Shown here in pieces: positions 1-38,400 of a stretch of DNA of 64,000 nt. The translations under genes were made by a program, and so were the position numbers. Below the pieces are notes generated by a model, which did not search any database, was not told the DNA's origin, and saw only the letters and a list, made by a program, of their open reading frames with translations. The stretch lies in the NCBI GenBank assembly GCA_964035545.1, contig OZ037765.1, positions 24,241,504-24,305,503 of the forward strand, given 5' to 3'. Positions within the stretch are counted from its first letter, which is position 1; each line of letters starts with the position of its first letter. Source of the DNA: Bugula neritina. Lineage: Eukaryota; Animalia; Bryozoa.

Positions 1-1116
1 CTTGAATAACTTAGTAAGAGTTATCCTCTCTTTACCATTATCCTAATTATTGAAGTGTCGATAGATTTTAGTGTAAACTGTTTTCATATGTTGCCATCCA
101 TGTTTTTACATTTTACATTTCATTACAATATAATTATTACTACTGAGAAAACCTATCGATTATAATTTATTTATCTTGCATGTACACCTATTATATGATA
201 TTGTGCATAAACTAGAGTTTTCTAAAATTTAATTTCCAGTCATTATATTGTATATAAAATCAATGCTATTCTGACTTGGCCTACCTTTTGATGGCTTTTT
301 GATACAAATGTTTGCCAGCACTTAAGTATTTAGTGTAATTTTGAAACCTTATAATATTTTAATTGCAGGCAACTCTCTTTAATTAGTAGTCATTCATTGA
401 ACCTGTGACCCAAGACCTGACTGCAGTGTCATCGTGGTGTGCTTGTGTTAAACAGTTGATAGCAGCTTTATTGTGCATACTCCGTATAAGTTTATAACCT
501 TATTACACTTTATGAAGCATATCCAAATCTTATATAATGACTGCAACGGTGTTTACGCAATATTAAAAAAAGTTTTGTAAAATAACACTGCATTGGGTAC
601 CTTGCGGTTAAATAGTATATCAGCAATATGCTAATAGTACGTTCTATTACAAAGTATATTAAATAACAATAAATTGCTCTTTTTAAAAAGTAATAAAACG
701 ATGTAATTCAGTTGTTCTTTAAATAATAGGCTATTTGGTATTGACTTTGATACTCTAAATCTGTGTGGTTTAGCTTTAACAGTCTAAGTCAAATTCCGAA
801 GACCATATATCATACTATGAAAAAATTGAACAATTTATTTTAAATTTGTTATAAACAAGTTATTAAAAATCATAATAAGCAAGATGCAGGACAACCTTGA
901 AAATTATAAAAACTGATTTACTAATGTCATATGTAACATTTAAAACTAATGCACTATGCTGAACAAATCAAATGTTAATTGATCATCTTAGATCAACATA
1001 ATCGCTTGAGCTTGGATACCTTAGTCAGTTATTTTGAAACCTAAGCTGTTTGGTGCTCTAACTAAAAAGTAGTTAATCGTTGGGGGTTATTATGGGAGAA
1101 AGCTATTAATAATGCT

Positions 1117-4100
1117 CTACAAAATTATGCAAACTTTGCTGCTAGATTTCTTTTCTTGGTGCTCCAAGTTTAATGCAAATTCAGCTGATTCTTTCATGAT
1201 TTGATTCATGCTCTTTAGTACAAGCTGAATGTCTCCTTTATAACCTGCTCGAGCTGCTCTTGCTACTGCATTTATCAGCACCTCCTATATAAGTAAGTAA
1301 GTAAGTGGTTTTATATATATATATATATATTATATATATTATAGTGCTACCAATTATGAAATATAGTAATACATACTACATCTCCTGCCACTGCACTATG
1401 TTCATTATATGATACATCAAACATAAAATGTTACGCAACATGCTACTAGCTGCACACCTAGCTATTAATTACTATTCTATAAAATAATTAAATCTATAGA
1501 AGCCGTATTTTCTCTTTGGGACGAAGCATAACCTAAGTATATGCATAAGGAACAAAATTTCCAAGATTTATTACTTCTAAAGCCTTAAACAAAACTGATT
1601 TGATAAACTAACCTGTTTAGTAGAGACGTTTCCATGTGTAGTTAAGAGTGTAGCCATTGCTGAAGCTAACACGGAGGTGACTAAAGATCGGGCAATCCTT
1701 TGAAGTTGTCTGTTTGCAGACCTACTGGAAACTGTAACAGGTTTCTGAGACTCTAAAAGCTCCTTGCTTTTCATGTCAATTATTTCTGATATCACAGGCC
1801 TCCAACTGACTGTGCAAGTTTTCTGCATAAAAAGTAATATATATGTAACATAATTATTAAATTTCTGACTGTAGGTAATTATTATCATTGTAATAATCAT
1901 TCAAACTAATATCATGTGTTTTTATTATATATATATATAAGTGTCTAGTGAATCTCACAAGTTTTCTACTTCTTGTCTTTTCTGGAATGTAGACCTCACA
2001 CGGAGGGTAACTAGTCTCAATAATGTCTTCAATGTTTAAGCTTGGATATATGCAATCTGCCCAAGAATTGCATTTTCCTGATGAAAGATTCTCTGAATAA
2101 AACATTATATTATAGCCACGTCAACACAATAAAAAGTTTACAATTATAAAATTATTTTCTGATGTAAACAAGCTGTCAATAAAGCCTGACACTAAGTAAT
2201 ACAGGTATTGTTTTAAAAGAGAATTGCTGTCATCACCTTTGAGTGATGAGAAAAGCATTTCTAAATTAATCTCGCACTCATTTCTAGACAGTGTGATGTC
2301 ATTGTTTAGGAATGCGTTGAGACAACTCCAAAAGCACATGCATGTAGAGCCAGCGTTGTGAGTGTCTTGTGAGTTCACTCTTATCACCAATGGATTCCCA
2401 TTAACTTCTATATCAGTCTTCAATGCATTACAGTAATTACTAATTACACTGTTACACTATTAATTCAAAACAATTATTTTACAGCACTGACACTTTAGTC
2501 ATTCATATCTTTCAACGATTATATTAGAAAATTTTAGAACATTTTACGCAATTTTAATCTAATGAACTCTTATAGTAGTTTTACCATATGCATAAAACAT
2601 AGCCACTAGATATAAGATGTAATTGACAAAGCAGAATATCCACATGGTAAGATAACTCTATAAATCTCATAAAATTAAGGTATCTAGTTAACCTCCAGCA
2701 TACAACTCAAGTCATTGACTTATTTCTTACATTCAGTTTATACCTTTAAGTTTGGTGTGAAAGTTGAGCTTGCCAATTTTCAAAACCACAAACAATTGTA
2801 AGATATCAAACATCATAAAAACAGTAAAACCTACAAATACCTTCACTTGTATTAGGTTACATTATGTCTATGCACTCTACTGGTTTACCTGATACACAGT
2901 GAAGATGTACTCTATACCTGCCTACCTGATATACAAGGCCTGGATAGACTGAGAGGCACAGAAGTGTTACTTTGAGAAGCGGTTTCAAGGCCAACCATAT
3001 GACCCTCATAGTCTCAGGGTGAAACAGTCCTCTGCAGCTGACATACAGCTCAGAGTCTTCGGTGTAGTAGATGTGACTCGTCGCCTACAGTCAAATAATC
3101 TGGAGTTTTCTTTAATTATTTGTTGCGATTTTTTTCTGTCTAGCATCAGTACTGTACGTAAATCAACATTTTTATTTAATCTTATTTTTAGAATACTATA
3201 GCTTTTCACTTTGTTTGACTTTCAGCTAATGGGTTTTTAATGCTGCAATGTTGTCATAACAAAGAGACAAAAGCCATCAATAACATCATAGTAGTTAATC
3301 AATGTTATTTTCACAACTAATCTATTATAATTGATTTCAACAATAAAGATGTCACTTTTAGTTCTAAAAATGTTGGTAAAATAGAATTTAAAAATAATTT
3401 TACACTTATATAAGTGATGACTTCTAGCTATACAACAGGAGCACACAACTCACTTGAACACAGATATAACTTATATATGGCAGTTATATAGCTTGTTCAG
3501 CATCACATTATATTGTGCCTGTAAATTTATCTCTTACCTAAACTAATCAAAGATTGTTTTTGTTTCAACCTTTTTTTAGATAAGCTATAATTAAAAATGA
3601 TTAATGTAATATTAATTGACAAAATTTAATCTTACTTCTTCCTTGTATTTACAAAGTAAGCCTCTTTCCCACATGTATTTGTATGTTGATTTGTTTACAA
3701 CTTTGTAACACTGATACTGAATTTGTTTGAAAAGCCAATCTCCGATGTCATCTTTGTTTGGTAAAGAGAATATAAATCCTAAGTGAATGTCTTCATTGAA
3801 GTGATTTTCAGACCAGTTTACTTCCTAAAACGAATATGGTATTGGTTGAATAAATGTCACATGCGTTTGTTTAAAGTTGCAACTCCTGCAGTTTGTAGAT
3901 TTGTAGGCAGGCTAGAAACTGTGCCTTTACAATGCTGATAAAATAGCTTCAAATTTTTTGCTTATGACCTGAAGCAATTATGGCTGATGCTCCCACCAAT
4001 TACTATACCAATACCCTACTTACTAGCCCACAGTTGCCCTCTGGTTAAATAAATCTCACTGTCCGGTATGAAAATTGCAAGTAGTTTATATGTCGCGTTG

Positions 4101-7100
4101 GAAAAGCCTCTAAAAAAATTATATTGGTACGCCACCAATCGTTGTAGCTTTCTTGCTTTATTACTACATTACATCAAAAGCTATTCTTAGCTAGTAGTGC
4201 TGTTACGATAATTCAATGTCCCTAGCACAGCACAGGTCAGCGTGTTCAGATCAAGCAGTCTCAGAGGAATACTTTTAACTTCTCTCTTTTAACTAAAGGC
4301 TCACTACGTCTGCTACTATATTATACAAACACACAGCTTTATACTCTAATATTTCATACTCTGAATCTAGACCACTGGTTTGACATTTTGGATGACAAAG
4401 GATATCTTATCTGTGCATCAATTTTGTAAGTCTCATTTGAATTAATATGATGTCCTTTTACCTGCAGTTTATGTATACATTCTACAATAGCTATTGTCAT
4501 TTTGTTTAAATCTATACTATTCTCATAATGTTTCTCTAACTTTTTGATCTACATTGTTACTTACAACAGCTTGAGTCACTATGACTATGTATATTTATAC
4601 ATTACCTATAGTGATGATGCTCAAATATTTTGATTTTGATGTAACTTATATTATCTAAAACCTTCCTGTGGTCTAATGCAGTTTAAATAATTTATATTTT
4701 TCCCATTATATTTCCAGGGTACGATTCGATAGTTAATAAACTTAATGAACCTGTTGCAAAGTTGGCTGATAGATAAAGTCAATCACATTTTAAGTCCTCC
4801 AGACACAGTAGCAAACCTGATACAGAAATATCTCTGAGTTCTCATCATGTTAGACTATATCACATACTGTAACATTCACATAACATGCAAGCTAACTGTG
4901 TTAGGTTTGAAGTAATACTCACTGGTTTGCAGGTCTTCAAAGACCCTAACAAAGGAAGAGAAAATGTGATCTGTGTGGATAGAGATGAATAGTTAGGAAG
5001 GTGCAATCTCTCCATAGCTGGCTCATCTCTTACCATGTTCACATGGCGTGACAGCAAGTTTTGCTCAGATAGAAAAAGCAGTATTAGCATTATCTGCTTT
5101 TCTGGGTAGTTTTTTTCCTAGGCAAGTATAAAGCATTATAGCTAGTATAATTATAGCACATTGATTAACATGATTTTACTCTAGAACGATATTAAATTAG
5201 CTACCGTATAATGTTTTACTGTAGACTTTTGAATCCATATTTCAGTGAAAGCAATCAACTAAGAAAAAATTTCGATTAATTCTTTTTTGTAGAAAATAAG
5301 TAGAATAATAGGGTTTCCTATATTACTTTTACCTTAATTGCTAATAGTAGCTTGAAAGTATTTTAAATTTCATTACGTAAATATTGCTGAACACTGTACA
5401 TCTTCTTATATTTATTTGACAAAAGTCGAATTTTGAAAACTAACTTGCCAAAGCAGAGGAAAGAGAACTTCTCTAATGACACCCAAAGCTGGTATCTCCT
5501 CCAGAGCTTTCACTATCAGACTTGGTTCAGGCTTCATGGAGACACCAGTTTTGGGCCAAAACCGGTTAGCCTCCAGCTGTAAGTTTCTGTTCAGACCATC
5601 CAAGTGGAACAAACATGACAGATTAGCAAGCTGTCTGGGATCAATGCAAATGTGTTGTGAGTTTTCTTCTTGTAGTCTCATGAGGATTCCCTATTAAAAA
5701 TCAATTCCAAGCATCTAATTTATTTGGAAAACATTTTATTTGGTGTGTATATAACAGCTGTTATGCTGAGTGATGATATATTTTATGATTTTAGGTAAAA
5801 TGGCACAGGTAATAAAGGCACAGGTAAAAATGGCACAGGTAATAATGGCAGAGGTAATAATATACTGCAAATGGAAAAGTAGGTATTTTATTTACACTTC
5901 TGTATATTTATAATAATAGTTTTAATTTGACTATTTTAACCTAACTAAAGTTGTCGTTGCATAGTGACAGCAAAAATTAATTTATGACTCCTGCTTTAAA
6001 AATGAAAATCCTTATTTTATAAGTCACCTGCTTCACTCACCTCAGTAGTCAGTGAGTAGAGTGTTTGTTAGCTATATTAAATAAGGTAAACTGCTAGACA
6101 AACCTTAGAGAAAAGTTGCTCAATGATAAGATGTTTGGTTGATTTCAATGATAAGGTTGATGGGTTTGTAACTGGCTGATTCTCAACCTTATGCTCTAGA
6201 AGATTCTTTAATACATCATTCAAAGGATCTGTAACTTTGCCATCTTGTTGAATGGTGATTTCACTCAAATCTACGATGAGTTGGTCATGTGATCTCAGCA
6301 GATGTAACTGTTGAAGTATACTTCTGTAATCTTGCAAATGGTCACGTGATGCAATAGTGTCAAGTCTAGATTCTGTAGGGACTTGTAGCACTTTCCTTAA
6401 TACCAAGTCAGTGCATCCTTCTATACCCTACACCAACATAAGCCGCTTTACCGTGGGTCAAGCAAACTCTGTTTATATAATTAAAATGTTTATAACATAT
6501 TAGTTGAAAGATTTGTTCTCTATTTAGTAATTACCCATTTACCTATATAACAATTTTCTATTTAGAAATGTAGGAAATCGATATAATTTGTAAGATTTTT
6601 TAGATAGCAAGAACTAATCTAACAAAAGTTAAACTACTTGGTGATGCTGAAAGTTTACTCCTAGAATGTCTTCCGTTATATTTGGTCTTTTAATGAGCAG
6701 ATCTTCATACTTGATTACTTCTTGTAGTGCTAGTGGGCTGCAATTGCCGTCTCTATATTATAGTAAAATAAGTACAGATCTTCTATCATGATACAAGATT
6801 TTCAGATAATTTAATTCAACATAAAAGTGTGACAGGCCAAATATTATTTTAAATTATTAGTAGTTTTAAACTCCATGTTTATAGATCTACTAAATAGATT
6901 TAATTTTTAATCATTTTTAGTATTTAAACTTGCCTAATTCTGTTCATTTGGTCGACTAATACACCAGAAGTATTTTCTCCCCATAAGCAGATTTCCTTCC
7001 AGAGATAAGCTCGAACCTTCTCTGTGACTTCATCTTCCACCACATCAGCTGTACAGCTTGTTCCTATTAAAATTACTGGACTGCCGGGGACCTGCAGGAA

Positions 7101-8916
7101 TGTTGAAACCATTTTTAAAGTTGAAATATATTAACTTCAAAGACCTATTACATTTTGGCAAAGATAATTAGACCCAATTTTGGTTTGCTGAAACTAAATT
7201 GAAAATTAATAATGCAATAAAAGTTTGTTTTTTTTTCTGTGATTGCTTTTACCACAACCTGCTTATATGTACATATGTAGATATGCAGATATGCACATAT
7301 TATGTACACACACATACACGAACTGCATACACATATGTCCGTATATGTGCCTAAATGTATCACTTGAATATTTATATTATGTTACATAGAAATTAAAATC
7401 TTGCCTTCTGTTGAACAAGTTTAGTGAAGTGTAAAGCAGCTTCAACACTCTCTTGTCTGAGCCAGCTGAACGTGATGAGGTAGGTTGTGCTTTTAGTAAA
7501 GTAACTTTGATGAATTGGCCAGCAGCACTAGAGATGAAAATTCAATTCTCTTTTTAATATACGAAATCATGGAGAATGAATGCTATTAATTTTTTTAAAT
7601 AATGATCACGTTTGCAATTTAACTTATTTTAAACCCAACAGCTAATATTTGCAACTTGCAAGATATTTTAACAAAAAGTGTTGTGAAAGCTATATCTTTT
7701 GACAAGTAAATGTAACCTGAATGACTAAATATTGGTATAAAGCTTTGCTTTTTGAAAAAAAGCTGTTGGAACATACATTTACAATATTTTTGCCAAATGC
7801 AGTTATTATTTTAAACAAAGTATACCACCACTAATAATATTATGGTGTGTAATTAAAAGTTTACTCCACGGTTTCCACTTTAATTTTTTTGCAGAGTACA
7901 AGCTAATAACTTTTTAGCATTAAAATTTCAGCTACTGTTTTGCTAAAATAAAAGACTCTGGTATATTAAGTCAAACTAAAGTACATTAAAACAAGTTATC
8001 AGAAAATATTCAGTAGCCTCCGTCAGTTGCAACAGATTCTTGTAAGTCTAACTAAGATTTTGGAACATGTAAAACTTTACCTTTCTTCCTGTCATGTCCC
8101 ATAATTCAATAGTGATGTGTTCTGCATCTTCAATATTCTGTTTCTTTAGCACTTTTTCTACAGAAAAATAATTTTGTTAATGGCAGCAAAATGTACATAC
8201 GTGAGTGTAGATAGATGGATGAATAGATAGTGTAGATATAGATGCTTTTGTAAATAATTTTCCAATGTAAATGGCTACGTTATTCAATTATAACTATATC
8301 AATCAGTTTTCAGTACTCATGTAATCCTGCATTGTGCAGATACTCCATAGTCTATATATATAAAGTATCATCTATGTATTATGGTATACATACTTGCTAT
8401 AAAAGAATGAGTAGAAGGTTTCCATTTCGTCAACTCGACACCGTCAGTTGGTTTTGTACACAACTCATATACACCAGATACTAGGGATTTGATTAAACTG
8501 CTTTTACCACTCCCTCTATCTCCCAGCACCATTATTCTGTGACTTGACAGTCTACATTATAGACTGAGCTCTAATATCATTGAGCCTTCTTACAAACTTT
8601 ATCATTTTGAGCCTAAGTCTATATCTTCTTATACAGTTATCCTTCTAAGTGCTTACAGTTCAGTTTTTAACTTTTTCATACTTTGACTTTTTTAACTTGC
8701 CTATAGCTTGTCGGTTTAATTATCAAAGGGTATTAATTTTAGCTCTGTAATAGAGGTTTAAGAATTAGCAACTTTGTTTATCAAAAGTTATTTGCCACAA
8801 AGTAATTGCAATAATTTCAGTTTCTTAGTGATCATTAAGTAAACTATACCTTTGACCAAACTTATTTTGTTGAGCACCATGGTGTTAGAAGGTAACTTAT
8901 AATACTTTGAAGGCAT
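1117..8916 (-). CDS. ROCO-family (Roc-COR) GTPase, MFHAS1-like core, ~800 aa, ending in CaaX (CIIL)
   Basis: Frame-consistent exons (minus): 8551-8394, 8157-8081, 7527-7405, 7091-6934, 6752-6638, 6427-6188, 5690-5445, 5117-4923, 3824-3636, 3084-2889, 2407-2237, 2092-1959, 1822-1613, 1284-1117. Tentative 5' exons 8916-8850 and 8700-8682. Roc motifs: RIMVLGDRGSGKSS (G1), PTDGVELTKW (switch I), ELWDMTG (G3), HQSYFTKSTTYLITF, PVILIGTSCTAD (G4-like). COR-type motifs: ICIDPRQL, MWERG, YPGLVY..RVHLHC. The start is uncertain. Confidence 0.85.
5792..5860. repeat. ~15-bp minisatellite (CAGGTAA[A/T]AATGGCA), ~4.5 copies, intronic
   Basis: Direct reading: aggtaaaatggcac aggtaataaaggcac aggtaaaaatggcac aggtaataatggcag aggtaataat. 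Confidence 0.85.
7262..7350. repeat. Degenerate (CA/TA)-rich microsatellite, intronic
   Basis: atatgtacatatgtagatatgcagatatgcacatattatgtacacacacatacac... Confidence 0.6.
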
Positions 8917-11900
8917 AAACCTGAGAAGGCGAAATATCACATAGTGGATAACAAGATTACCATCACGAGTCATGAAAGTTGCACATTATTCAAACATATT
9001 TTGTCACATTGATAATAATCATGTAATACCAACAAGGGGTATAATATACTAGCTGATATTTTATGTTATATGCTAATGCAGTGGAAAACTATTTTACAAT
9101 CAACACATAGCATTTTGACATAACAGAGATGCACGCAGCATTATTGCACAACTCTTTTTTCTACATCTCATGTCTATATAATATTCTACTTCAGCCTAAC
9201 ACTTTCCGTTATAACTTACACCAACACCTTACCCAAAGTCTGTAACAGTTTGCTGTGTACTCGTCATGCTTTAATAGCTCACAAATAAAAAGAAAGGCTA
9301 CTGTGAAGCTGTGATGATAAATGCATACTCAGCAACTATGAGATATTCTAAGACTGTAATCTATACTCATCTATTGATTTTAAATTAACTAGGGTTTTAG
9401 CAAAACTAATAAATGTTTGGTAATACCTGATTAAAGAAGAATTACAAGTGTCAGTAGCCATAACAGCACTAAGCAAGCAAAGCTAATTATCAGCTCAGAT
9501 TTGTCAATCTGTTTCTTATGAAACACACAACTTATATATAATTGAATTCAATAAATTTGTTATAAACTGCATTGACTATAAACAACTACAACTCTGTTGT
9601 ATAATATAACTGTTATCTTCACTTATAGCTCTTGCACTAGAAGCAGCTCTGTTATTAGCAGACAAGTATAGAGCACATCCTGTAGTGATTGAACTGCACA
9701 AGCACAGGGAGCGCAGGTGCAAATGTACTGATCTTTCATACAGCAATTAGTTCCACTATGTTATGTGTGGAATTATGAAATTGCCTGCCCATAAAAATAA
9801 ACGAACTCCGAATGAGAATGTTGCACGAAACATGGGCGCAGACTGAGGCCATAGTTTTGTGGCAGAGCGTTAACAAGAATATAAAAATAATGTTTGCAAA
9901 TGAAATCATCTGTGAATGCAGGACTGTGTGATCAAAGAACAATTTTTCTCTCAAACGAACTATTCATTTCTTTGCACTCTGACAGCTAAACAGAAAAGAC
10001 TACCTCAAGTAAAATATTCAAAACAGGCAGCAAATAAGGTGTATCTTGTGATGAATCCAACCAGCTATCTAACAGCAATATAGCTGAATCATACTTTAAT
10101 AGCCTGTTTTTATTATTATAGCTTTTTGCATATCATTTTTTACTTTTCTATCCTATAGTCATGTCTGCAATAACAATCTAACTAAGTGTTGTAGTTACAA
10201 AACGCAAAAGAATTGATAGCAAATTAATTTTGTTAGGGGCTTTGACTTAAAATTTATTGAGTTCATGAATCCGTTTGACTCAGTTAATGTGAATATTTAA
10301 AAGTCTTTGCAAAGGCTAACTACAACAACTTGAGTTTTATAAGATTTATTGGAGGAGATTATCAACTTGGTGGGAAATCAGTAACAAAAAAAGGGAGTTA
10401 TCCTTTCATCATTGGTTGGAATGAGTCATTAGCCTACCCAGCAGTGTACTTTGTTCTGTCACAACATGCGTGCTAACAAACGTGCTAATGGTTTGACGCA
10501 GCATGGAGTGTATATAATAATATAATTATAATGTTCCCATTTATAAAGTAGCATTAAAGTGAAAGGTCAAAAGGCTAAAAGTTAGGACGATTGTAGTTGG
10601 ATTCCCCTAGGAATATGGCACTGGCTAAGATAATCAACGTTTTTACTTATAATGAATGCAGGAACAGGTTAGTTAATTCCATAAAGTTCACGCTCACACA
10701 CCTTGCAGTTGATTAACGTGTTGCTATCCCCAGAAGTTTTGTTCGCCCAGGATGATGACTTGTAAACCATTTCGCTCTACCATAAGTATGCACACACTGG
10801 GTATGCATTGCTTGACTATCAGGCAATCAAGCTATTATTTATTTCATAGAACACTTATAAAACAGTGTGAAAGCTCTAGAATAGAATCAGCTCAGAGAAA
10901 ATTATGAAGTCAAAGACAAAAAGTACTAATAAGAAAATCAGGCTCACAAACACACACTGTACAAAAGTAAAATCTAATGATAATTTAACATAGATAGTCT
11001 GTAAAAACATAAACTGCTTATAAAACAGTTTATCTAGATTTCTGGTAAATTAAAGGCTAAAAGGTAAATTCAAGATGTCATTTTATAAGGGAGAGCACAA
11101 CTTCTAATATGAGATGCTAATTATTACCGTCAATACTTCAAGAAAGACTTAACAAATTTTGCATAAACACCGATGCTAAAGAGAATTTTGACACACAGTA
11201 GGCAAAAGTAACTTGAATGTTACACAAAGTATCTTCAAGCCTTAACCTTCTCGTGGCCAGCTGTAAAGCTATTTTAAGATATTAATCAATTCAATTATTT
11301 CGGTCTTATACAGACAGCAAGAGCAAGTTTTTGGTTATTTAAGTTAAACAAATTTAATACAATTGGCCATGCACATAATCATAGCTATCATTTACTTCAT
11401 CATAGCTAAAAATGATATCTTCTAAATATATTGACTGTTACGTAATGCCGGAGCATTCATTAGATACTACACAGTTCTTATTACCTGTAAATATTATGCT
11501 GATATATAATGTTAATGTGTCTTTTCAAAAAATGTAAACCTGTTCAAATGCTGGACAAGCCTGGCTTTACTGAGTTAGCATTTTGTTGGGCACATAATAA
11601 CACTAGAAGGATGTTATTTTTTATCTATGATTGAAAATTAGCATCCAGGGTTTAGAGTTCATACCATATTTCATATAAAGTATATGATCGCCTAATACTT
11701 AGTCTACTTACATTTAAAGATGTGTATACTATTACAGCTAACTTTACAGCTATAATAAACTTGATGCATCACATGGTGCTCTTTGTTTTGTTGCTTTAAA
11801 TTCATATGTTTTGTAAAAAAGCAACACACTACCCTAGTTATGAAATCAACTGTAAGTGGGTTATGGTGAGGCATTAAAAGGTTATCACTAGGTTAAAAAG

Positions 11901-12589
11901 CTTTTTGGTGAAATCCAAGTTCTATAGATTAGTTGTAATAATAGAGATTATTTGACTACCTACTAGAACAGTGTGTATTGCTTATATAATGGGAATTATT
12001 ATCTTGCACATCAGCAATATTAACTGCTACAAAGTGTTTAGCATCGTAAACTTAAAATGCTATCAACTATTTTTACAGTTCTTAGAGTTGTTTACACATC
12101 ATGAGTTGATGCATTGATGTAAACAAATAACATACAGCCAAACGTTGTCCACCAGGGCTCATAAAGTTTGCAAAGTATTACTATCTCAATTTCTAACCTT
12201 TGCTGCTTCTAATCACTACCTTCAGTTTGACAAGAGGTAACCAAAGGTTAATGAGCATAAAGAGGGATTTGGCAACCACTTTTTATATACATGTAACTTG
12301 AAATTGTGGACTCCTCCACTCAAGTCCATCTTCCAATATTTAGGATAACAAAAAAGTAAAGATAACATTTCACAAGAGTCACGTTATCAGGCCATATTAA
12401 TATATGGTGTGTTATCAGTGCCAAGCACACACAAGTATGCTGCTCATTCCAGCAAAAACTTGCCAGATACAATAATAGGAAACATTTTCAGTTTGGATGT
12501 GAAATTTTCCCACATTGTAATATCAACATATGAAAAAGCTCTGATTTGTCATTGCCAGACTGTGCACTACAAGAAGTATTTAGTTGTAT

Positions 12590-12720
12590 AAGCTAATACA
12601 ATGTAATACAATGTATTGTATGCTATAACATAATATAGCATTACAATTGACAATGTAAAGTAACACAATAATCAGCATAAGATAATAACGAAATACCACA
12701 TTGTCATATAGTATATATAA
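12590..12720. repeat. Degenerate 5-bp periodic (ACAAT/ATAAT) low-complexity tract
   Basis: aatacaatgtaatacaatgtattgtatgctataacataatatagcattacaattgacaatg; complementary in character to 47180-47345. Confidence 0.5.
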
Positions 12721-13978
12721 TATCCTGCTGTGGCGTGACATGCGACATGCGTTAGTGCTCGCATAAACAAAATTTTTCAAGTATTTATATTAAAATAGCT
12801 TGCGTTTGCATAGAATACAAACTTCGTAGCTACACATAAAATTTTCACAGTATTACTTTTAGATAGTGCAGACATGTATAAATTACATAGAATATTATAA
12901 TGATGCTGTAAGCTGTCAATCATTTTGTATAAAAATTTGTATAAAGAGCAACAGAATGGTGAGACTGGTTTTCTCATTTAGAGCTCTTCTGTAAAAATAT
13001 ATTATAAATGATGTATTGCAACAGAAGCTCTGGATATGCCAGTTCATAATACTTAGTAATAAGTCTTTCGCTTATATGCATTATATATGTATTTAAAAAA
13101 AATTACGAGAGAAGCTTTTACTGGAGTCAAAAATACAATGCTTATAAATATTATCTTTCTTATTTTAAAGATATGATATAAAACTTGCTGCATGTTGTTT
13201 ATTAGCAGTTTGACTTCTTAATAATTTATAAGACTTCAATTTTAAACATCCAATAAGTTGACCCTAAGTTTCGTGGATGAAAAAAACATTTATAAACATT
13301 TTGGTGACATAGATATGCTTCTATCTATTATTTATGAACAACGCTGCAAAGGCGTAATCTACACTATTTTATTACAAAATTTCTTCGTTCAAAATGAGTT
13401 TATTTTACAGATGCAACAGAAGTACGTTTTAGAACTTTTTTTACAGAAGAACAATTGCAGATCATAGTTTACTCAGATCAATTACCACTAGTCCACCTAA
13501 CACTTCTTAGTGTAGTGAAATATAACACATGGTGACAGTGTGGTGCATTTTTCATATTGTCACTTCCACCATGGAGCAAAACACCTGCAGAGCTGCTGCT
13601 AAACTGTCAGCAGCCATTAATTCAAGCATTCTTTAATCAAATGCTATAATAACTATGATCACTTTGTGTGCAAAGCATTGCTAAAAGAATCAAATCAGTT
13701 GTAAATCTTGTTAATGCAGTTTGTGTATTTATATAATTATATACATTTAACATATAGCTCAATCAATTGATTATGCTTCATATTCAAGCACAGCTACACC
13801 AGAATATAAAAAAATAAAGCAATATTTTGTCGCAACATTTGTGAAGCAACTCCTTAATGGCACTAGAATTTAGCTCAACAGTTTATAGCATCTACATGTA
13901 TGTATTGGTAGCTAAAATATAATACAAGGGAACTAACAGTGTTGTACTATGTAGAGTTAGTCTGAAAATTCTTCATAT

Positions 13979-15591
13979 CTATTTCTTCATGATCCAGATT
14001 TCGTTATATCTGTTGAAAATTTTCCATGGTCCGTTGTACACTGCAGTGAAGAACATAGGATCAACAGTATAGGACTGACCATCTCGATCCAAGTCTGCTT
14101 TCAAGTTATTGAACTCCATAGCGAATAATTGATCTCCGTAAATTAAATCGTAAATTACATCGCTGAAGATCCAGGTGGTGAATGGCCTACAATTTCAAAT
14201 TATAATCAGTTATAATTTTTTTTAGTTGCTTGTTTTAGAAGAGTTTTATATTACTACATTATTTAAAGATTACAATGATGGGAACACCATATTTATATAC
14301 TAAACTTAAGCTATCGGCTTGCTTACCTAACAAAGTACTCATCTTTGGCAGCTCTGTAAATCTCAACATCTGTGTTAGTGGGCTTAGGGGGATTGTCACT
14401 CATGTTAGCTGGAACCATAAAATTCATCCAGACTTCATCTTTTGCATGACTGTTCACCACAGGCACAGTCATGTCCATGGTTTCATCTAAAATCAGAAAG
14501 AAAGCATTCTTAGCATTGTAAACTAACTAGTTGTTTGACTCAGCTTTGCAACTTTGCCATAATGTCTTGTAACCTTCATTTTAACTAAAGTAACACAAGA
14601 CAAGTCAAGCAACTGGAAAAAAATACAATTGACTGAAGTATTTACAAGTGAGCAAACTTAAAGAAAAACTGTATTAATTTATACTTAGCTTTATTAACAT
14701 GAAAATCTGAAGTACGATCTGCAAGCAACCTGAGAAGTGCAACTATATTTTATACCCTAAATCTAAAGTAAGAAAATTTGCTTTTAAATCTAATTAGTTA
14801 CCCCATCGGGCAGAAATAATTATATAACTGTCTTCATGGAAAACAACAATATGACGATGATCCATTAAATCAAAATAATTACTGTAAACTTTACTTACTC
14901 CTCTCATTTTCTCCTTGAATATAACGGAAGAGTTTCATGAATGCTTCTTTTGTAGAATACTTATCTTCCCAGTAATCAGCAGTCAGGTTTGACACCTGAG
15001 TGCTGCTCCACACTGAAGGACTATATTCACGCAGTTCATATCCCTGAAATTCCATAACAAAACCCTTTACAAGTAATGGAAGCAGAAATACAGCCAAAAA
15101 GTTGCCAGTCAAAATGTTTGGCTATTCAATCTGATTTATGAAACACTTCAAGTCAAAAAATACCAATTCCAAGATGAATAAGCATGGGTTGTTTCACCCA
15201 GCTATACAAGGTATGCGCAGTAATGGAGAATTGAGAAGTCCCCATGTTTTTTAGAAAAAGAAAAGCAGCAAAAGAATTTTTAGTTCCCAGAAATTCTAGC
15301 TGGAATTTTAACCCTCAACCTAAACAAAAGTTCATAAAGAAAATTAATTAAAGAAATATTTCTAGATACTGCGCCTATATGACCATTACTTGAGTTTTAG
15401 CATTCCCCATAAGTGACTTTGACTAAAAGACTACTCACATTAAAACTCTGTATTACACGATATTCGGGGCACTCGTATTCTCTACAAAAGTCAGGCTTCT
15501 TTGTAATAGGAGTTTCTGAAAAAACATTCCAGAGCCATGGAGCTGCTGCCGACAGCTGTATTACAGCAACAAGAAGCAGTAAAGTCTTCAT
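13979..15591 (-). CDS. SOUL/HEBP2-like heme-binding family protein with signal peptide (copy 1)
   Basis: Four exons ~15591-15439, 15044-14897, 14487-14328, 14186-13979. MKTLLLLVAVIQLSAA signal peptide; [65 protein letters not shown] are SOUL hallmark motifs. Confidence 0.93.
15210..15280 (+). repeat. Dispersed repeat copy (degenerate), in SOUL-1 intron 1
   Basis: gcagtaatggagaattgagaagtc...tagaaaaagaaaagcagcaaaag aligns with 28537-28632 and the reverse complement of 44295-44361. Confidence 0.55.
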
Positions 15592-15663
15592 GGCTTGTAA
15601 AACGACTTTCTGTTGAAGTAAGAAGAAAAGTTGAAGATGCTACTTAGTGGTGAGGACACTTTC

Positions 15664-15696
15664 TTTTATACCTAAAGTAACCACGTGGTCATGTGA
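15664..15696 (-). promoter_or_regulatory. TATA box plus adjacent E-boxes upstream of SOUL copy 1
   Basis: TATAAAA on minus strand 15670-15664, ~75 bp upstream of the ATG; CACGTG 15682-15687 and GTCATGTGA 15688-15696. Confidence 0.55.
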
Positions 15697-17346
15697 TCAA
15701 ACACACATATTGACTTTTAGTGCCTAGACCAATCTTTGCTTACATAACCTTCATTTATTTTGACAGCATCTGGTTTTTATAAGGAATAAAATCTTGTATA
15801 ATTATTTTTTGATTGCATAAGCAAAAATATTTAAATAAGACTATCAAGTTTTGATTCACTAGCTGAAAATATTAGGGTGAAAGGTCCAGGATATCAGCTG
15901 GCTTGTATAAAAAATGCTATTCATTCATTATGCACATAATATCTTGATGCTGACAAAACAGATTTCAACTACTCAAAATTATGATGGCAAAAAGCTGCAG
16001 ACCATTGAAAAAAATAGATTACATTCATAAATATAGTGTTTGTATAGTAAACTGGGCTTATTTTCTGCAGTTAATCCTCCCTGATGCTCATTATACAATT
16101 GCACCTCTGCATTAAACTGCACCACACCAAATCGGCACTTTCTAGATCCTGTTGCTATATAACGTGACCTGTTTACTAGTACAATTTTTTTACCAAACAG
16201 TTATATTTGAGAGCTAGGGCTGCACTGTAGGCAGAGCTTGTCTGCAAAGGCTAAATGTGTATAGCTTTGCATATATTTTAATACACTGTTTTTAATTGGA
16301 CATGAAAATAATAAAAGATGATTTCACAATCAATTTTCATCAGCAATAGCAATATAATTTGCACGAAATTTTTTTCTTGATGTTAATACAGGAATACAGA
16401 CTGCCTTACTGATACAAACTCACAATGGAACCAAATATTTACAAATATAGTAATTCTTTCCAGGAATTACTTCTTTCTGTTTAGCATGGTATATAGATCA
16501 CCCAAACAGCTAAATAATTTTTTACCACCAAAACATGCCAGCTGCGTCAGTTTCTTTTTTAAATATTGTAGCACGCATTTATTTATAATATTCAAACTCT
16601 TTAGCATTCAGTCATGCCTTTTCATAGAGCTTGCAGTGATATTTTTTCTAACTATGTGCAAAAAGCCAATGTTTGCACTAAGCCAATTTAGAAAGGTCCT
16701 TAGTCTATATAGATGTCAGTCTAAATAGATGTCGCATACAGTGAGACTAAGCTGGTATTCTGATATAATATTAATGCAACCATTTATCTGGCCAGGTTGA
16801 GCAGTCAGTTATGATTCAATAAAGTTTTAGTAATCCATGTCTTGGTTTCTTTTGCTTACTATTGCTGCTAAACCCCTTCCCAAAATGATGACTAACAGAT
16901 TATAGAAAGATCATAACAACAGCTACACGTTCTACAGAAGTTTAGTTGATAATACATTGTCATCAGTTTTCTTATTATTTTATTATTTATAAAACATTTT
17001 TTAAAACTGTAAAGCAGGTGGAGTTAATATTTAACCCTGCCCAGAATTGTTCATAAAAGCCGCAAATGAATACAAATTTATTATAATTGGCTGTCAGCCA
17101 ACATTTAGTTCAACAAAAGAGCACAGATCTACTCATAGATATCAAAAACAATGCATTTACCAAAGTTATATCAATAAATCTGCAATAAAAGCAATTACAG
17201 GTAACTATCATGCCCATTGTTTTTTAATAATAACAATAAAAATATTATGTAACAAAATACAATTAAAACATAGTTAAAAAATGATGCATTTTATTAAAGT
17301 TTCAAGTCATATTTTACAATGAAATAGTTTGTCAATAGCATGAACT

Positions 17347-18962
17347 CTATTGCTTCATGATCCAAACTTCATTATGTCTATGAAGGAACGTTGTTGGGCC
17401 ATTGTAAACTGCAGTGAAGAACATGGGGTCAATTGTATAAGGTTGCCCATCTCGGTCTAAATCTGCCTTCAACTGTTCAAACTGGTAAATGAAGCGATTT
17501 TTAGGCACCCAGCTTCCAGGTACCCACGTAGTAAAGGATCTAAAATTGAGTCACTTTTATAAAATATATTCAATCTAAATAACACCAAGATGCATTGACA
17601 TCTAGTTTGTGGAGACCCGTAGAGTCCCACAACCCACTATTGACATTGACAGTTACAATTATTTTGGCAATAACTATCTACAAACCTAAGCTAGGTACTC
17701 ATAATTTTAAAAAAAATCTGCTGTTGCAGTACTTTCCAGCATTATGCTAATACCAGGATGTGTACTGACATAGCACAAACAGGCTTCAATGAGCAGTAAT
17801 TAAAACTCATATCTTCAATTTCGGTAGTCAATATTACAAGATTTTAATGTTTCATTTGTCATAAGGAATGCATATTCTCGTTTAGCATGCTTTTATATTA
17901 TACCTAACATAGTACTGATCACTATCAGCTCTGTAAATCTGAACATCTGTATCAGTGGGCTGAGGGGGATTGTCACTCATGTTAGCTGGAATCATAAAAT
18001 TCATCCAGACTTCATCTTTCTCATGGCTGTAGACCACAGGCACAGTTCTAGCAACGGTTATATCTAAATAGAAATATAATAGTACTGTTAGGACTATTTA
18101 CCATTGTTATGCTTTAGTTTAAAAGCTTAGAGGCTTGCTGGCTTCACTTCACATGTATATATCATAAAAAAAATGTATGCTACAGGAAGGCAAACTGTCA
18201 TTTAAATAGCATAAAACTGATTAAACAGTGTTTTCGCAATAATACTCACTCCTATCATTTGCCCCTCGGATGTAGTTAAAAAGCTTCATATAAGCAACGA
18301 TAGAATCATCTCTATTCTCCCAGTACTCCATGTCCAAAGAAGGCACTTTAGCAGAGGCCCACACCGAAGGGCGGTATGTTCTTAGTTCATATCCCTGATT
18401 GAATTTAATAAAATTAACCTAGTATTTCTATAAACTTTAAAAACTGATATAATTAAGTTTTCCTACACTCATGTTTTCACTATTAAAAAAAACCTAGCTA
18501 TATATATATTTGAAAGTGAATAGATTGTCAATATCAGTATATAATATTTCATCATATTATTAATTTCTTTTCATTAGCAGAGTATTATTAGTATTATTAG
18601 ATGATTCTGCTGAACATGTGTTTGTAGTGATGAGATACCATAAAAATGCTACAGTTTGAGTAAAAAAATGGTTAAACAAGTTAACCAACTTGTGGTGCCT
18701 TAAAGTTTTTAAAAACTTTTTAAATGATGGTCTTGGTAATTTAGGAACCAGTTGTTACTAGACTTGTTATTTGTTAAAGCGATTAACTTACCTCCAACTG
18801 TTCTGTTTCGTATTCTGGACATTCATATTTTCCACAGAATTTAGGCTTGGGAATTGGGGCAGCTGTAGAGGTTGTAGGAGCAGTTGAATCCCAAATACGA
18901 AAGTTGAACCATGGCATGGCAATTGAAAGCTGCAGCAAACATGCAAATACTAAGAACTTCAT
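17347..18962 (-). CDS. SOUL/HEBP2-like heme-binding family protein with signal peptide (copy 2)
   Basis: Four exons ~18962-18792, 18394-18250, 18064-17905, 17539-17347 with the same intron positions as copy 1. [15 protein letters not shown] signal peptide; [64 protein letters not shown]. Confidence 0.92.
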
Positions 18963-19037
18963 TGCTGTATTTTTCTTTCAACAATCACACTACAAGTAAT
19001 AACTTGATTTTGTTTCTTGTTCACCAACAACCTCTTC

Positions 19038-24259: not shown

Positions 24260-25589
24260 CTAGATAACAAAATCATCACACTTTTCTGTAACAGTTTCAG
24301 AAGATAGAAGAGTCTTCACAACTTTAACCAACTCGGGGAAAACAGAGTTCATGTAATGACCAGCCTGGTCAGACTTATGAAATTGTGAATTGGTTTCCTT
24401 AGCAACCAGAGTTTGCTCTTCCCAGGGTAAGAAGGGATCGTCACTGGAGCCAAACTGTATAATATGTTTACAATGAGACTTCATATCACTCCACCGCCAT
24501 GGTCTATTAAAATACCCACTCTTTTTCTCAGTCTCATCACCCAGGTCAGTCACATATGCAGAAACCAAAATCATTGCAAATATTTCATGAGTCTCAGCAT
24601 ATCTCATTGCAGCCACTGCACCAGAGCTACAAAGTAGGGTAGAGTGGCGAGATAGGAGTCTAAGCATGCAGTAATGTTGCAGAATAAACAGAAGATAAAT
24701 GTGTGTATGTCATTAGCATATTATAACATGTATGAATGAAAAACATACATGGTTTTACAACTTCAAACTATCACAAGATTCATATGATTAAAGGTATGAC
24801 ATTCATTATGATACTAAGCATGTTCACATAATAGATAAGTATAGATGTAACGGTAGATTCATTTCTAGTTAATCTACACAAATTAAAAATATTTCAAAAG
24901 TATTCTATTTGGTACACAAGATGTTTTCCTCTCATAATCAAATGCCTAAAAGTCAATGTATCTTCTATATTAGTAAAAGCTACTCCCCCCCCCCCCCTAA
25001 TTTCAGTATTGTAAAAGTTGGGAAAAAATTTAAAAGTTGAATTAAACCTGTGAATACAAATTCCTTCATGGAATAGGGCCAGATGTTGAGTATCAGCAAC
25101 CATACTGGTTAGTCTGATAGAAACCAACTATTAAATATGATACACATGCTTTGCTAAGCAGTACTTTTTTTAGCATAGATTAATTTCAAAAACACAAACA
25201 TTTACTTCATCGTTTATTATTTTGGATATGAATGTAGGCATTTTCGAAAGTACAAATAAACAATGCACTTAAGGAGTAGTCAAATATTTTCTTAGCCAAG
25301 TTACAGTAAATCCACTGAAAACACAGTACAAATAGTTCTAACCTATGTCCAATGATTATAGTGCTTTCATCACACTGCAGCTCTTTCTCCATAAAGGGAA
25401 TCCACTCTTTTTCGCTAGCTATCACCGGGTCGGGCATATTTTTCAACATGCTTTCAATTCCAAGCTTCTTAACGTTTTTATGTGCCCAGCTGTACCAATT
25501 AGCTCTGTACACATCACCACCTCCATTGCCAGGAATGATAACGACTTTCCGTGGTTTAGAAATGTTGTTAACAGCTCCACATGCTTCAC
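24260..25589 (-). CDS. RBBP9: RBBP9-like alpha/beta serine hydrolase domain (probably the C-terminal half of a fused ORF)
   Basis: Exons 25589-25343 and 24626-24260: VVIIPGNGGGDVYRANWY, MPDPV.A.E..WIPFM, IIIGHSSGAVAAMRYAE (GxSxG nucleophile split by a phase-2 intron), SGYFNRPW, QFGSSDDPFLPW (Asp), GHY (His). No in-frame ATG upstream within the exon. Confidence 0.9.
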
Positions 25590-25887
25590 CTAAACCTTCA
25601 GGTTCATAGAAAACATATTATTTTGATAACGGATTTGTATTGAAAAAACTACGTGCAATAGAAACTGCTTGACACCTAACAACATAAAACAACGTACAAA
25701 TATGTTTCAATATATAAATACTATCAACTACAGTTTGCCCTGAGTGCCGTGCTAAGACTCAAATATAATAATTGAATTATCAAATGGAGGTTTCAACAAG
25801 AATATAAGCTATAATAGGCAGTGCATTTGTCCCCGCAAGGAAATCTGACTGACAGTTTTGAGCACAGTATATGAGTAAAGTACAGAC

Positions 25888-26820
25888 CTGTGGTTAGTTT
25901 TTGAGACTCTTCTTTCCTGGTGATACTATGAAAATACTTGCCATACGGTGAATTCCTTCTTGCAATGTCTTCTGCAGTGTCCTTGCCATCATTTAAAATA
26001 GACTTATCTATATCAGTTTCAGAGAGTAGAAACTTGAGAACTGCTTCAGCGTCACCATTGACTGCAGCTAAATGCAGTGCTGTATTATTACCATTAGTCA
26101 GACTATGCACATCAGCACCTTTTGATATAAGAAGTTTAGCTGCTTCAACATTGTCCCACCTGCACGCACTGTGGAACGGCTGCCAGCCATCAACAGTTCT
26201 AGCATGTATATTTGCTCCTTGGGCTACTAGAAATTCTATCACTTCAATATGGTTATTATAAGATGCTCTGTGCAATGGAGTATACAAATCATCATCAATC
26301 ACGTTGACCAATGAGGCATCAGTATGAAACAACCTTTCAACTTGTGTTAAATCATTGTTCTCGGCAGCCCACAGCATGTATTTCTTAGGGTCGGCTTTAA
26401 TCTCTGCCAGAGTATACGGATCTTCAAACAATTCATCTTCGAGAAAAGCACTAGGCATAGAACTGGCTTCCCCTTTCTTCATTAACAGAATCTATGCAAA
26501 AGTATGGTCAACATAAGCTTATATAAATGTGGAGATAAACACAAACATACTTTTGTAAATCTATTGAGAAATGAAGAAAGAAACAAGTTTAAGTAAGAAG
26601 ACTTATAGGACATGCTAGGGATTACCTACATATGATGGGTATTTTAAAACCTATTATATACCAAATTAGCTGTTACACTCATTGGGGGACTTAACAATGC
26701 AAACATTTAAACCTTACAGTTGCACTAGACATTAATATATTAAACTTATACCTGCTGCAAAAATTGCTGTGTCATTAAGTCTATATCTGCAGGGGTGGTG
26801 TCTTCTTCATCTGAAGACAT
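25888..26820 (-). CDS. ANKRD49: ANKRD49-like ankyrin repeat protein (probably the N-terminal half of a fused ORF)
   Basis: Exon 26820-26752 (MSSDEEDTT...QQ) splices to 26491-25888 (or reads to a stop at 25793). DPKKYMLWAAENN, YTPLHRASYNNH, TVDGWQPFHSACRWDN, TALHLAA, TAEDIARR match the ANKRD49 layout. Confidence 0.88.
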
Positions 26821-35423: not shown

Positions 35424-38400
35424 TCACAGCTTTGCTTTCAGTGCTTCCCTCATAGGCTTGATATATTTGTGGAATGAAGGGTGTACCTATAACAAGATTA
35501 CTTGTAGTGGTTATTTGAATAACTAATGAAATTTGCCCAATTTGACAGAACTTAAGATTATGCCTAATCTTTAAGTTAAACTTATGTCTTGGTTTGAAGG
35601 CAAGTTGACCATGCTAATTTGGAATTGTGTGCTTAAACATGGCACCTTCAAAATTGCAAATGGTACATCTTCATGAATAACTACTCCTTTTAAAACTATG
35701 CACTAAAATAGTTTGAATTGAAACTTTTCATTTTTTATGTCAGTTGACTGTCAAGAATTTATACTACATCTAGTTACTACTACTGAGTATAAACCCGTAA
35801 TTATACTGTAACATTAACTATACCTGGTGTTGATTGAGTGTAGAGTCCTTTGCATACTCATACAGAGCTTCATACACATTCCCATCATATCTTCCCAGAC
35901 AACTATTTAGCAGACGATCTGGATAATCAAATGCATCAACCAGTGCTACAGCATTTGGTCTTAACTCTTTCAACAGCTCCATACGCCTCGCAATCAGAAT
36001 GTCCACTTGCTGTGAGGATATTATACTAGTCTGCAAAAATTGGAAAATAAAATGATTATACTAGTGAAGCTAAATAAGTCAATTTGGCTAGCAACACATT
36101 ACATAAACTTTCTTTCATTCTGATAAATTTTTAAACATGTTGAAAAACACTTGATCAAAATTTGAGAAATCTATGCCTGGCTAAACAAATAATTTCTTAT
36201 TTTAAACAAGTAGATGGAATGAACTCACTAATGAAAATAAGGTACTGCAATTGACAGAGAGTATAAACAACTTGGTGTGCCTGAAAATTGGTTTAAATTT
36301 ATAGCAAATTATTACAAGTTTACTGCAGAATTTAGTCATAAATCTAAAAATTGCAGACAGCATAACTTGACCATATTGTAGTGTACTGGTGAAATATTTT
36401 AAAGCCTATACGAGTATATACATGTTCAGCAAAGGTAAAGAAAACCATGAATTTTGTAACTCCTTGCCGAGAAGTGAATATGGAAAGCACTTATGTAAGA
36501 AGCAAAAAGTGATATACGAATATAATAATACTGGAGAGCGAAACAAAATTGCTATAGTTAGATTAAACTTCCCCTGAAAATATTTTTTGCTTTGTAAGTC
36601 CACAGTATAAATATAAACTTGAATTGTACATTGAATAAACTAGAAGCATTATTTGCGAAACACATTGCTTTTTAGCAAGCCAAGAATACAGATGTTGCTC
36701 ATCATTGTTATCAAAACCCTAAAAAAGATCTCTACTTACAATGTGATAGTTTTGCAACTGTTTTCCATAAAAAGAGTTAAGACAACTCCATTCGATTTCA
36801 TCAATTCTATGTTGAATTACCTTTAGGTTTAAAGTTAAATAATCAACATAAGTCAAAATGCTTTTAGTTCAGATTTTCATATAGCATGCGAGAGGCTGTA
36901 ATTGAAAATATTTTTACTTTCAAGATCCAATCAAGAATGACATAGGTAAAGTCTAAAGGTATAACAAAATAATATCCTAAGAACAAGCACGACTTACTTT
37001 CAAAAAAGAGCCGGAACTTTCCAGCACATTGTTGACTAGGTAGAACTCGCAGACCTGTGTCATGGCTGCCTTGGCTTTAGCCTCCCAATCACTTCTTTTT
37101 AGGATATCAACAAATATAGCGGATGTAAGAAACATTGCATATGCCTACAACAGCACACAATAATTAGCAAACTGTATTTCACAAGACATCAATAGAAAAA
37201 TTCAACCTGTTCAATAAGAGGAAATAAATAACATTCAAAATAGTTGTGCCCTGACCTTAGCTGCATCTACGAGCCCCTGAGAGTGCATATTCCAGGCCTG
37301 CTCTTCATTCATAGACTCAGAAAAAATACATTCTTGCATTTTACCTGTCACATCTGTTATTAGCCTATAAAGTGAGGAGGATTCGACTTGAATAAAACAT
37401 GCTTGTGGAAAGCTTGATTACATGTACATACTAATACTTAATATCTAAATATATTTTAAATCTTTATTCAAATTTATATAAATGTACTGTATTCAAATAT
37501 TTAAACTTATATATTTTTTATTTAAATTCCATCTATTTATTCAAGCATATTAAAGTTCAACATACATTGATTCAGATCTTAAAATAAAGAGTCTAACTTG
37601 GCACTTACAGCAAAGAGTTGAGTTTGAACGCTAAAGTATACAAATCAAAGTTAAAGGTTTGAGCAGATTTTAGCATAGGAGGGACATCTAGTGGATCACT
37701 GAGGAATCTCATCATCACCGGCAACTTCTCACCAGCCTGACCCTTCATCAGAAACTTGAGTAGAGATCTGCAAACAGAAATAAGTCAACACAATACTACT
37801 TTCACAGAATTGTGCTAATAAAGACTTCTTCAGTAAGCTTTATTGTAAGCTAACTTTTAGTATAAATATATTAATGCTATTTATAAATATAACGTAACCT
37901 TAACATTATTATCACTGGTTGGTGTGTGCTAATACAAAAGGATAACAAAAATCTTACTCTACTGAACACCAGCGTTATAATGTTTCCAGAGAGCAGACAA
38001 CACAGTTGGTATTTCACTAACAACAAAATTTACAAGCTATTAAGTAGGAACCAATCGAATGGATATTTATATATCTAAAAATAAGATTCATTTAAATGCT
38101 GGAAAGTCAAGAAATATTATAGATTGTAGATGAATAAATTACTATAGAACTATGCATGCTAAAGCATTTTGTAAAGTTATGTCCTAGATATTCACCTGGC
38201 ACACTGCAAGTACATCACAGTATTGTCTCCTTCATAGGTGCAACCGGGAACGCACCGCAAATATATCTTGGGTATGCCACTCGCATGACTATAGCCGTGA
38301 CCTCCGCATGACCTTCTACACACTTCTATGTTGGCACAAGCTACATCTGAAGCGTAGGCTTTCAGACTTGAAGTTAGACAGTGAATCTAAGCATGTAAAA

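Follow-up and report, generated by a model that had tools for sequence, protein, structure and literature searches.

The window analysed here is a stretch of 64,000 nucleotides from the bryozoan Bugula neritina (assembly GCA_964035545.1, contig OZ037765.1, positions 24,241,504 to 24,305,503 of the forward strand); positions given below are counted from its first letter. Near its start, on the minus strand, lies a gene for a predicted ROCO protein, in which a Roc GTPase domain and a COR domain are combined with a C-terminal CaaX prenylation motif. Fourteen exons, from the P-loop exon (8551-8394) through the last exon (1284-1117), are joined in a single stop-free frame according to a scripted translation, and all of them are bounded by AG acceptors and GT or GC donors. 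The exon count agrees with a first-pass annotation of this DNA, which had described one open frame of 14 exons running from the P-loop to the last exon; the P-loop motif GDRGSGKSS and the last-exon peptide were also found where that annotation had placed them. The predicted protein is arranged in the order Roc, COR, linker, Ala-rich three-helix tail and CIIL, followed by the stop codon in exon 14. The gene is present as a single copy in the genome, since a search with the profile of its family finds one locus.

The Roc domain extends over the first six exons. Exon 1 (8394-8551; RNA, family profile E 5.8e-12) carries G1 (the P-loop) and G2 (PTDG), exon 2 (8081-8157) G3 (WDMTG) and exon 3 (7405-7527; GC donor) the switch II region, the latter two being assigned by RNA and family profile. 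G4, here GTSCT without an Asp, is located on exon 4 (6934-7091; GC donor, RNA) together with the beginning of a helical insert, which ends on exon 5 (6638-6752) with the G5 region; an RNA joint fixes the 3' end of this exon. Exon 6 (6104-6427; RNA) comprises the end of Roc and the start of COR-A, is approximately 30 amino acids longer than in the orthologues and gave no similarity signal. COR-A continues on exon 7 (5445-5690; RNA), the most conserved block of the family (z 31), and ends on exon 8 (4923-5117; family profile E 6.5e-9). COR-B is encoded by exon 9 (3636-3824; family profile E 4.4e-7), where a weak Pfam COR-B match of the orthologues is also found, exon 10 (2926-3084; family profile) and exon 11 (2237-2456), on which it ends. 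The end of COR and the start of the linker were placed on exon 12 (1959-2092); the boundaries of exons 11 and 12 are defined by frame and phase only. The linker and the first, amphipathic tail helix follow on exon 13 (1613-1822; profile E 1e-5, hhalign E 5e-5), while tail helices 2 and 3, three Lys, the CaaX box and the stop are encoded by exon 14 (1117-1284), which matches the family tail weakly, though in the right place.

With single window exons as queries, Pfam recognized only the P-loop exon (Roc, E 6.6e-6, 26.8 bits versus a cut-off of 27) and gave no COR match. Six orthologues exceed the Roc cut-off, and their matches to Pfam COR-A and COR-B are below the cut-off. The COR assignment of the first-pass annotation is nevertheless upheld by the family profile, which exons 7-10 match in order with COR directly after Roc, and by a fold search with the model of an orthologue. 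The columns that vary least across the family fall into COR-A and the COR-A/COR-B junction. Neither a kinase nor a death domain was matched by any window exon or orthologue, and a model of the tail gave no significant fold match; the earlier description of a ROCO devoid of kinase, death domain and leucine-rich repeats (LRRs) is in line with the domain searches in this genome, which found none of them for this gene.

Splicing was compared with RNA-type reads over positions 5400-11390, a range in which six of the 13 internal junctions fall within a spliced contig. This contig (2738 nt, RNA-type run X1) joins the first seven exons over six introns, including two adjacent introns with GC donors (at 7404 and 6933), both of which are thus confirmed by RNA; the corresponding donors of the orthologues are GT. 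The contig is approximately 92-97% identical to the window exons, and thus stems from a sibling lineage. The rest of the contig, 1535 nt, has the length expected for the 1275 coding bases that follow and some 260 nt of untranslated region (UTR). This lends indirect support to the later exons and to an end near 857. A poly(A) signal lies close to this point (839), and a probable 3' UTR (834-1116, minus strand) would extend as far as it. Exon 6 is changing fast, with at least 16 amino-acid-changing and at least four silent codons among the listed differences from the sibling lineage, compared to three and five, respectively, among those listed for exon 7; the pattern in exon 6 suggests relaxed or positive selection. 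An additional exon at 4461-4360 is compatible with the frame and was dropped, as it has no counterpart in the orthologues, whose flanking exons join directly. Intron 6 contains a 15-nt tandem repeat (5793-5861) with very high depth in both runs, and therefore this is a common genomic repeat.

The P-loop exon requires a preceding phase-2 exon, and three candidate starts on the minus strand fit (ATG 8916, ATG 9267 and ATG 8679). The N-terminus had previously been placed at ATG 8916 (exon 8850-8916), which is compatible with the frame only via a 19-nt micro-exon (8700-8682) and is not covered by RNA, while the two other phase-2 first exons fit equally. The RNA-type run is without depth at 8600-9199, which counts against this 71-nt exon; of the earlier spliced model, six junctions were seen in the sibling-lineage contig and the first exon was not. 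A second short piece in the same area (8657-8700) would run from ATG 8679 to a donor at 8657. The tentatively preferred start is ATG 9267, from which a candidate first coding stretch of 12 codons (9233-9267) leads in phase 2 to a strong donor (GTAAGG). The spliced contig starts at G 8552, consistent with a preceding exon whose last base is G, for example the one with the donor at 9233, and mollusc orthologues likewise have a short phase-2 first exon. Further upstream, a 597-nt RNA-type contig (9290-9805, minus strand) is similar to the spliced contig in depth (25 versus 19) and has 23 gap letters and no long frame; because of its many gaps, it is probably a non-coding 5' exon, presumably belonging to this gene. 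The protein would comprise 853 amino acids with ATG 8916 and the micro-exon or 836 with ATG 9267, and whichever of the three starts is used, the Roc domain begins after fewer than 35 residues.

Relatives of the protein are widespread. Exon 7 alone retrieved 47 clusters of relatives with up to 60% identity, and the named members are from gastropods, bivalves, annelids, nemerteans, hemichordates and echinoderms. Nearly all of them are annotated as uncharacterized, and a few bear automatic MFHAS1-like or LRRK2-like labels (the two "MFHAS1-like" entries are automatic similarity names). Judged by these sequences, the family is an old bilaterian ROCO orthogroup with members in five other phyla. No chordate protein was among the matches listed by word-based homologue searches (at least nine, three and six proteins), listings which do not show absence from chordates, arthropods or non-bilaterians. 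The genes of Haliotis, Patella and Ylistrum have 14 exons after a short initial one, and a comparison with the Haliotis donors shows the window gene to agree in the phases of all 14 introns and in intron order. Nine of the 14 window exons match the orthologue exon of the same number (z 3.8 to 31), exons 4, 5 and 12 do so weakly, and exons 6 and 11 show no signal. A quick tree of 18 orthologues, calculated without the window gene, broadly follows the species tree, with the ambulacrarians as one well-supported group and little resolution among the molluscs. Conserved gene neighbours were not shared in the sea star, limpet or scallop loci, an exact look-up of seven exon open reading frames gave no match, and a metagenome scan returned one short contig. 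Elsewhere in the Bugula genome (loci L026-L028 and many sites on contigs C1, C5 and C6), dozens of open frames of approximately 690 codons with a Roc match were found. They probably belong to a multi-copy, long-exon LRR-Roc-COR family, which the family profile matches in the Roc part only, while the window gene is single-copy with 14 conserved introns.

The terminal motif is shared by the family. A Cys at position -4 is present in all 21 orthologues with a complete end, which span five phyla, although several of them are close relatives; orthologues lacking it, which would have spoken against the CaaX box, were not found among these ends. One further locus also ends in CaaX. The last residue is Leu in 13 of the 21, Met in four, and Ser, Ile, Ala and Phe in one each. 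Leu at this position favours geranylgeranyltransferase I (GGTase-I), whereas farnesylation would be expected of the forms with Met or Ser. The 15 residues ahead of the Cys vary in sequence and are net basic in the orthologues, with two to seven basic residues near the Cys and a second nearby Cys in both nemerteans; in the window gene, three Lys no more than seven residues away from the Cys form a modest basic patch, a candidate second membrane signal. Because the Cys is found in all 21 complete members, the predicted CaaX box is an old and conserved feature of the family. The end CIIL could still be incidental or restricted to a minor isoform of a soluble ROCO, given that the last junction is predicted from sequence and that exon 14 is only weakly similar to the family tail. 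Yet the Cys is invariant while the residues before it vary, exon 14 equals the last exon of the orthologues in number, phase and length, and the length of the spliced contig fits this exon plus approximately 260 nt of UTR, which makes a soluble protein highly improbable.

A conserved, Ala-rich three-helix tail precedes the CaaX box, so that the architecture proposed earlier, Roc-COR plus an anchor, holds for these parts but omitted the tail between them. The tail has no match in Pfam, Atlas or the PDB, a search with its profile in the Bugula genome gave none either, and structure prediction folds it as three helices with low confidence. Helices of AKAPs carry hydrophobic residues at positions 2, 5, 6, 9, 10, 13, 14 and 17 (PMC12083921). 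In the first tail helix of the window protein, eight of these eight positions are filled and eight of the nine others are polar, and nine of 14 orthologues score eight out of eight in the same helix. In addition to being tethered by a lipid, the protein might thus dock regulatory subunits of protein kinase A (PKA) and act as a lipid-anchored AKAP with a ROCO switch. This addition is considered unlikely: Pfam RII-binding was not matched, the opposite face of the helix is Ala-rich in the orthologues, as in a packed three-helix bundle, and the register test is unspecific because a COR helix of three orthologues passes it as well.

The largest difference within the family lies ahead of Roc. Tubulanus, Owenia and Lytechinus have approximately 300 residues of FBXL-type LRRs (PF25372) there, and such long forms occur in a nemertean, an annelid, a hemichordate and sea urchins; an F-box was not found in any of them. 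In the nemertean and the urchin, the array lies nearly completely on one exon with a frame of more than 300 codons and is recovered by a leave-one-out profile with E 5e-60 and 5e-69. The short database models of Ptychodera and Diadema are truncated, and in both genomes the array is located upstream; the short Ptychodera model results from a frame break of the assembly inside the LRR exon (L046:9172-10339). In contrast, no trace of an array was detected within 10 kb upstream of the Haliotis, Patella, Ylistrum or Acanthaster genes. Long forms thus exist in spiralians as well as in ambulacrarians, which makes the array ancestral; the short form is a product of loss, probably on several occasions. 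The first-pass annotation had called the protein minimal; judged by the LRR-bearing orthologues, the state without LRRs is instead secondary.

In the Bugula window, the LRR profile found nothing, and no matching locus is located nearby. An LRR frame is absent from the 5.4 kb between the gene and the next gene upstream, which ends near 13980 (longest minus-strand frame 75 codons), so the conventional upstream array that would have contradicted the LRR-less description was not encountered in the window. That this gene is nevertheless a long form with its array in missed upstream exons is very unlikely. The truncated models of Ptychodera and Diadema also appeared to lack LRRs, the 5' end has several fitting starts and 11390-13979 lies outside the RNA comparison, but an array on a frame of more than 300 codons, as in the orthologues, is easily found. 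The upstream space is bounded by the nearest of three tandem genes for SOUL heme-binding proteins (13980-19000, minus strand).

For a sea urchin orthologue, structure prediction (mean pLDDT, a per-residue confidence score, 77) yielded an LRR solenoid, then Roc, into which a long helical hairpin is inserted after G4, and COR. A linker predicted as disordered (977-1054) leads to three helices (1055-1141), after which the chain ends loosely. The best fold matches of this model are LRRK1, Chlorobium tepidum Roco and LRRK2; for LRRK1, this Roco and the isolated COR domain (3dpt/3dpu, E 3e-8), the E values lie between 3e-22 and 3e-8. By sequence, the family profile is closest to the Roc domain of LRRK2 in the PDB (E 1e-17). 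Outside the ROCO proteins, the long form is best matched by FBXL2 in the GGTase-III complex (6o60_C; E 9e-13, root-mean-square deviation 3.0, 24% identity).

The window gene has retained G1 to G3 intact, the G3 motif being the same as in Haliotis. The orthologue of the limpet Patella has lost both P-loop and G3 but kept COR, tail and terminal Cys, and by its sequence is a natural pseudo-GTPase ROCO. GTP switching, which the first-pass annotation had presupposed with its Roc-COR dimer switch, is likely for the family, but since the window gene lacks the G4 Asp and Patella the P-loop, it may be weak in the window gene. The protein might therefore be a prenylated scaffold whose G domain is weak or dead: the anchor, the tail and the surface of COR would carry the function, and Roc would no longer switch, at least in this lineage. 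The G4 Asp is missing in the nemertean Tubulanus as well, the G3 Asp is replaced in Ylistrum, and invariant columns occur in COR and the tail and not in Roc. On the other hand, G1, the G2 Thr and G3 are preserved in most orthologues as in the window gene, G4 and G5 vary among Roc domains in general (PMC6337361), and Roc is incomplete in some alignment rows, which makes it look less conserved. A scaffold that no longer switches is possible, though we hold it to be rather unlikely.

Several other genes and features were noted in the surroundings. The next gene downstream, approximately 4 kb downstream of the window start (L023:3365-5975, minus strand), begins with a PH domain, after which a coiled stretch follows, and is presumably a RasGRF-like gene, the computed match being to the PH domain. 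Further into the window, an ankyrin-repeat frame is directly followed by an RBBP9-like hydrolase (25210-26491, minus strand), and two divergent acyl-CoA oxidase genes are located at 35821-41343 (minus strand) and 46333-52563 (plus strand). Small contigs of the assembly (L001-L020; e.g. C66, C101 and C110) contain small-GTPase matches with in-frame TAA and TAG and nearly no TGA, and this codon usage suggests ciliate contamination of the assembly.

Taken together, the gene is an intact, single-copy bilaterian ROCO and probably encodes a prenylated, membrane-tethered Roc-COR switch or scaffold without catalytic output. GGTase-I would geranylgeranylate the Cys of CIIL, after which, as for other CaaX proteins, the last three residues would be removed and the end methylated. 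The lipid and the nearby Lys would hold the protein at the cytosolic face of a membrane, where the flexible linker would allow Roc-COR to bind GTP and to alternate between monomer and COR dimer, by analogy to LRRK2 and bacterial Roco; crowding at the membrane would favour the dimer. As kinase, death and protease domains are absent, the output would be the binding of partners, most likely via the highly conserved COR-A/COR-B surface and the three-helix tail, and the ancestral FBXL-type array would have been a further binding module, lost here. In the cycle proposed for LRRK2, prenylated Rabs recruit the protein to the membrane, where it hydrolyses GTP and forms dimers (PMC6337361); the window protein would build in cis what LRRK2 obtains in trans.

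This reading has to be weighed against several points. The G4 motif of the window gene has no Asp, in contrast to the GTxxD of most orthologues, and the limpet orthologue has given up its P-loop. The RNA joints cover the first seven exons, while the later seven junctions, including that into the CaaX exon, are predicted, and exon 14 resembles the family tail only weakly. Moreover, the fold was predicted for the urchin orthologue instead of the window protein, and effector partners are hypothetical. We therefore favour the anchored switch with some reserve. A more far-reaching version appears doubtful, namely that this is the first lipid-anchored ROCO and acts on its own as a membrane switch in the manner of Ras. 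Its conserved tail helix would dock PKA or some other constant partner, its Roc-COR monomer-dimer cycle would gate a membrane signalling complex across non-chordate bilaterians, and its ancestral LRR-bearing form would be a further GGTase-III-type substrate.

A bilaterian-age ROCO orthogroup ending in CaaX would add a fourth architecture to the three published ones and bears on the coupling of GTP hydrolysis and dimer formation to membrane recruitment in LRRK2-type proteins. With approximately 840 amino acids, the protein would be a small animal Roc-COR model, in which the anchor is removable by one Cys-to-Ser change and no kinase confuses the read-out; natural variants with or without LRRs and with an intact or decayed P-loop are available. 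No description was found in the literature on ROCO proteins with CaaX, prenylation, bryozoans or molluscs, most subscription papers being outside the searched scope, and the family proposed earlier as undescribed still appears to be so, as no paper describing a prenylated ROCO was found.

Three groups of ROCO proteins have been published, none of which has a lipid anchor (PMC6337361). By family membership, the window gene is a ROCO, but on its predicted architecture it fits none of them. MFHAS1 and C. tepidum Roco (group 1) likewise possess Roc-COR without a kinase, resemble the long form in their N-terminal LRRs, and MFHAS1-type models and C. tepidum Roco are among the top fold matches. The family differs from them by its C-terminal linker, three-helix tail and CaaX box and by the FBXL type of its LRRs, which the window gene lacks. 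LRRK1 and LRRK2 provide the closest solved Roc by sequence and the best fold matches and would share a membrane-linked activity. Kinase, WD40, ankyrin and armadillo domains are, however, missing in the window family, and its lipid would be its own, whereas LRRK2 relies on prenylated Rabs (PMC6337361). Compared to DAPK1 (group 3), the window protein has neither an N-terminal kinase nor a C-terminal death domain. FBXL2, the fold match of the long form, is an LRR protein ending in CVIL that is geranylgeranylated (PMC9141697), a likeness that may reflect the shared LRR type only. GGTase-III substrates of the FBXL2 type combine an LRR domain recognised by PTAR1 with F-box and Skp1; the window gene has no LRRs, and no F-box was found in the long forms. 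With Rap, Ral and Rho, the protein shares an N-terminal G domain and a variable basic stretch followed by CaaX with Leu as last residue, but its G domain is a Roc, and this domain is separated from the putative anchor by approximately 600 residues, made up of COR, the linker and the helical tail.

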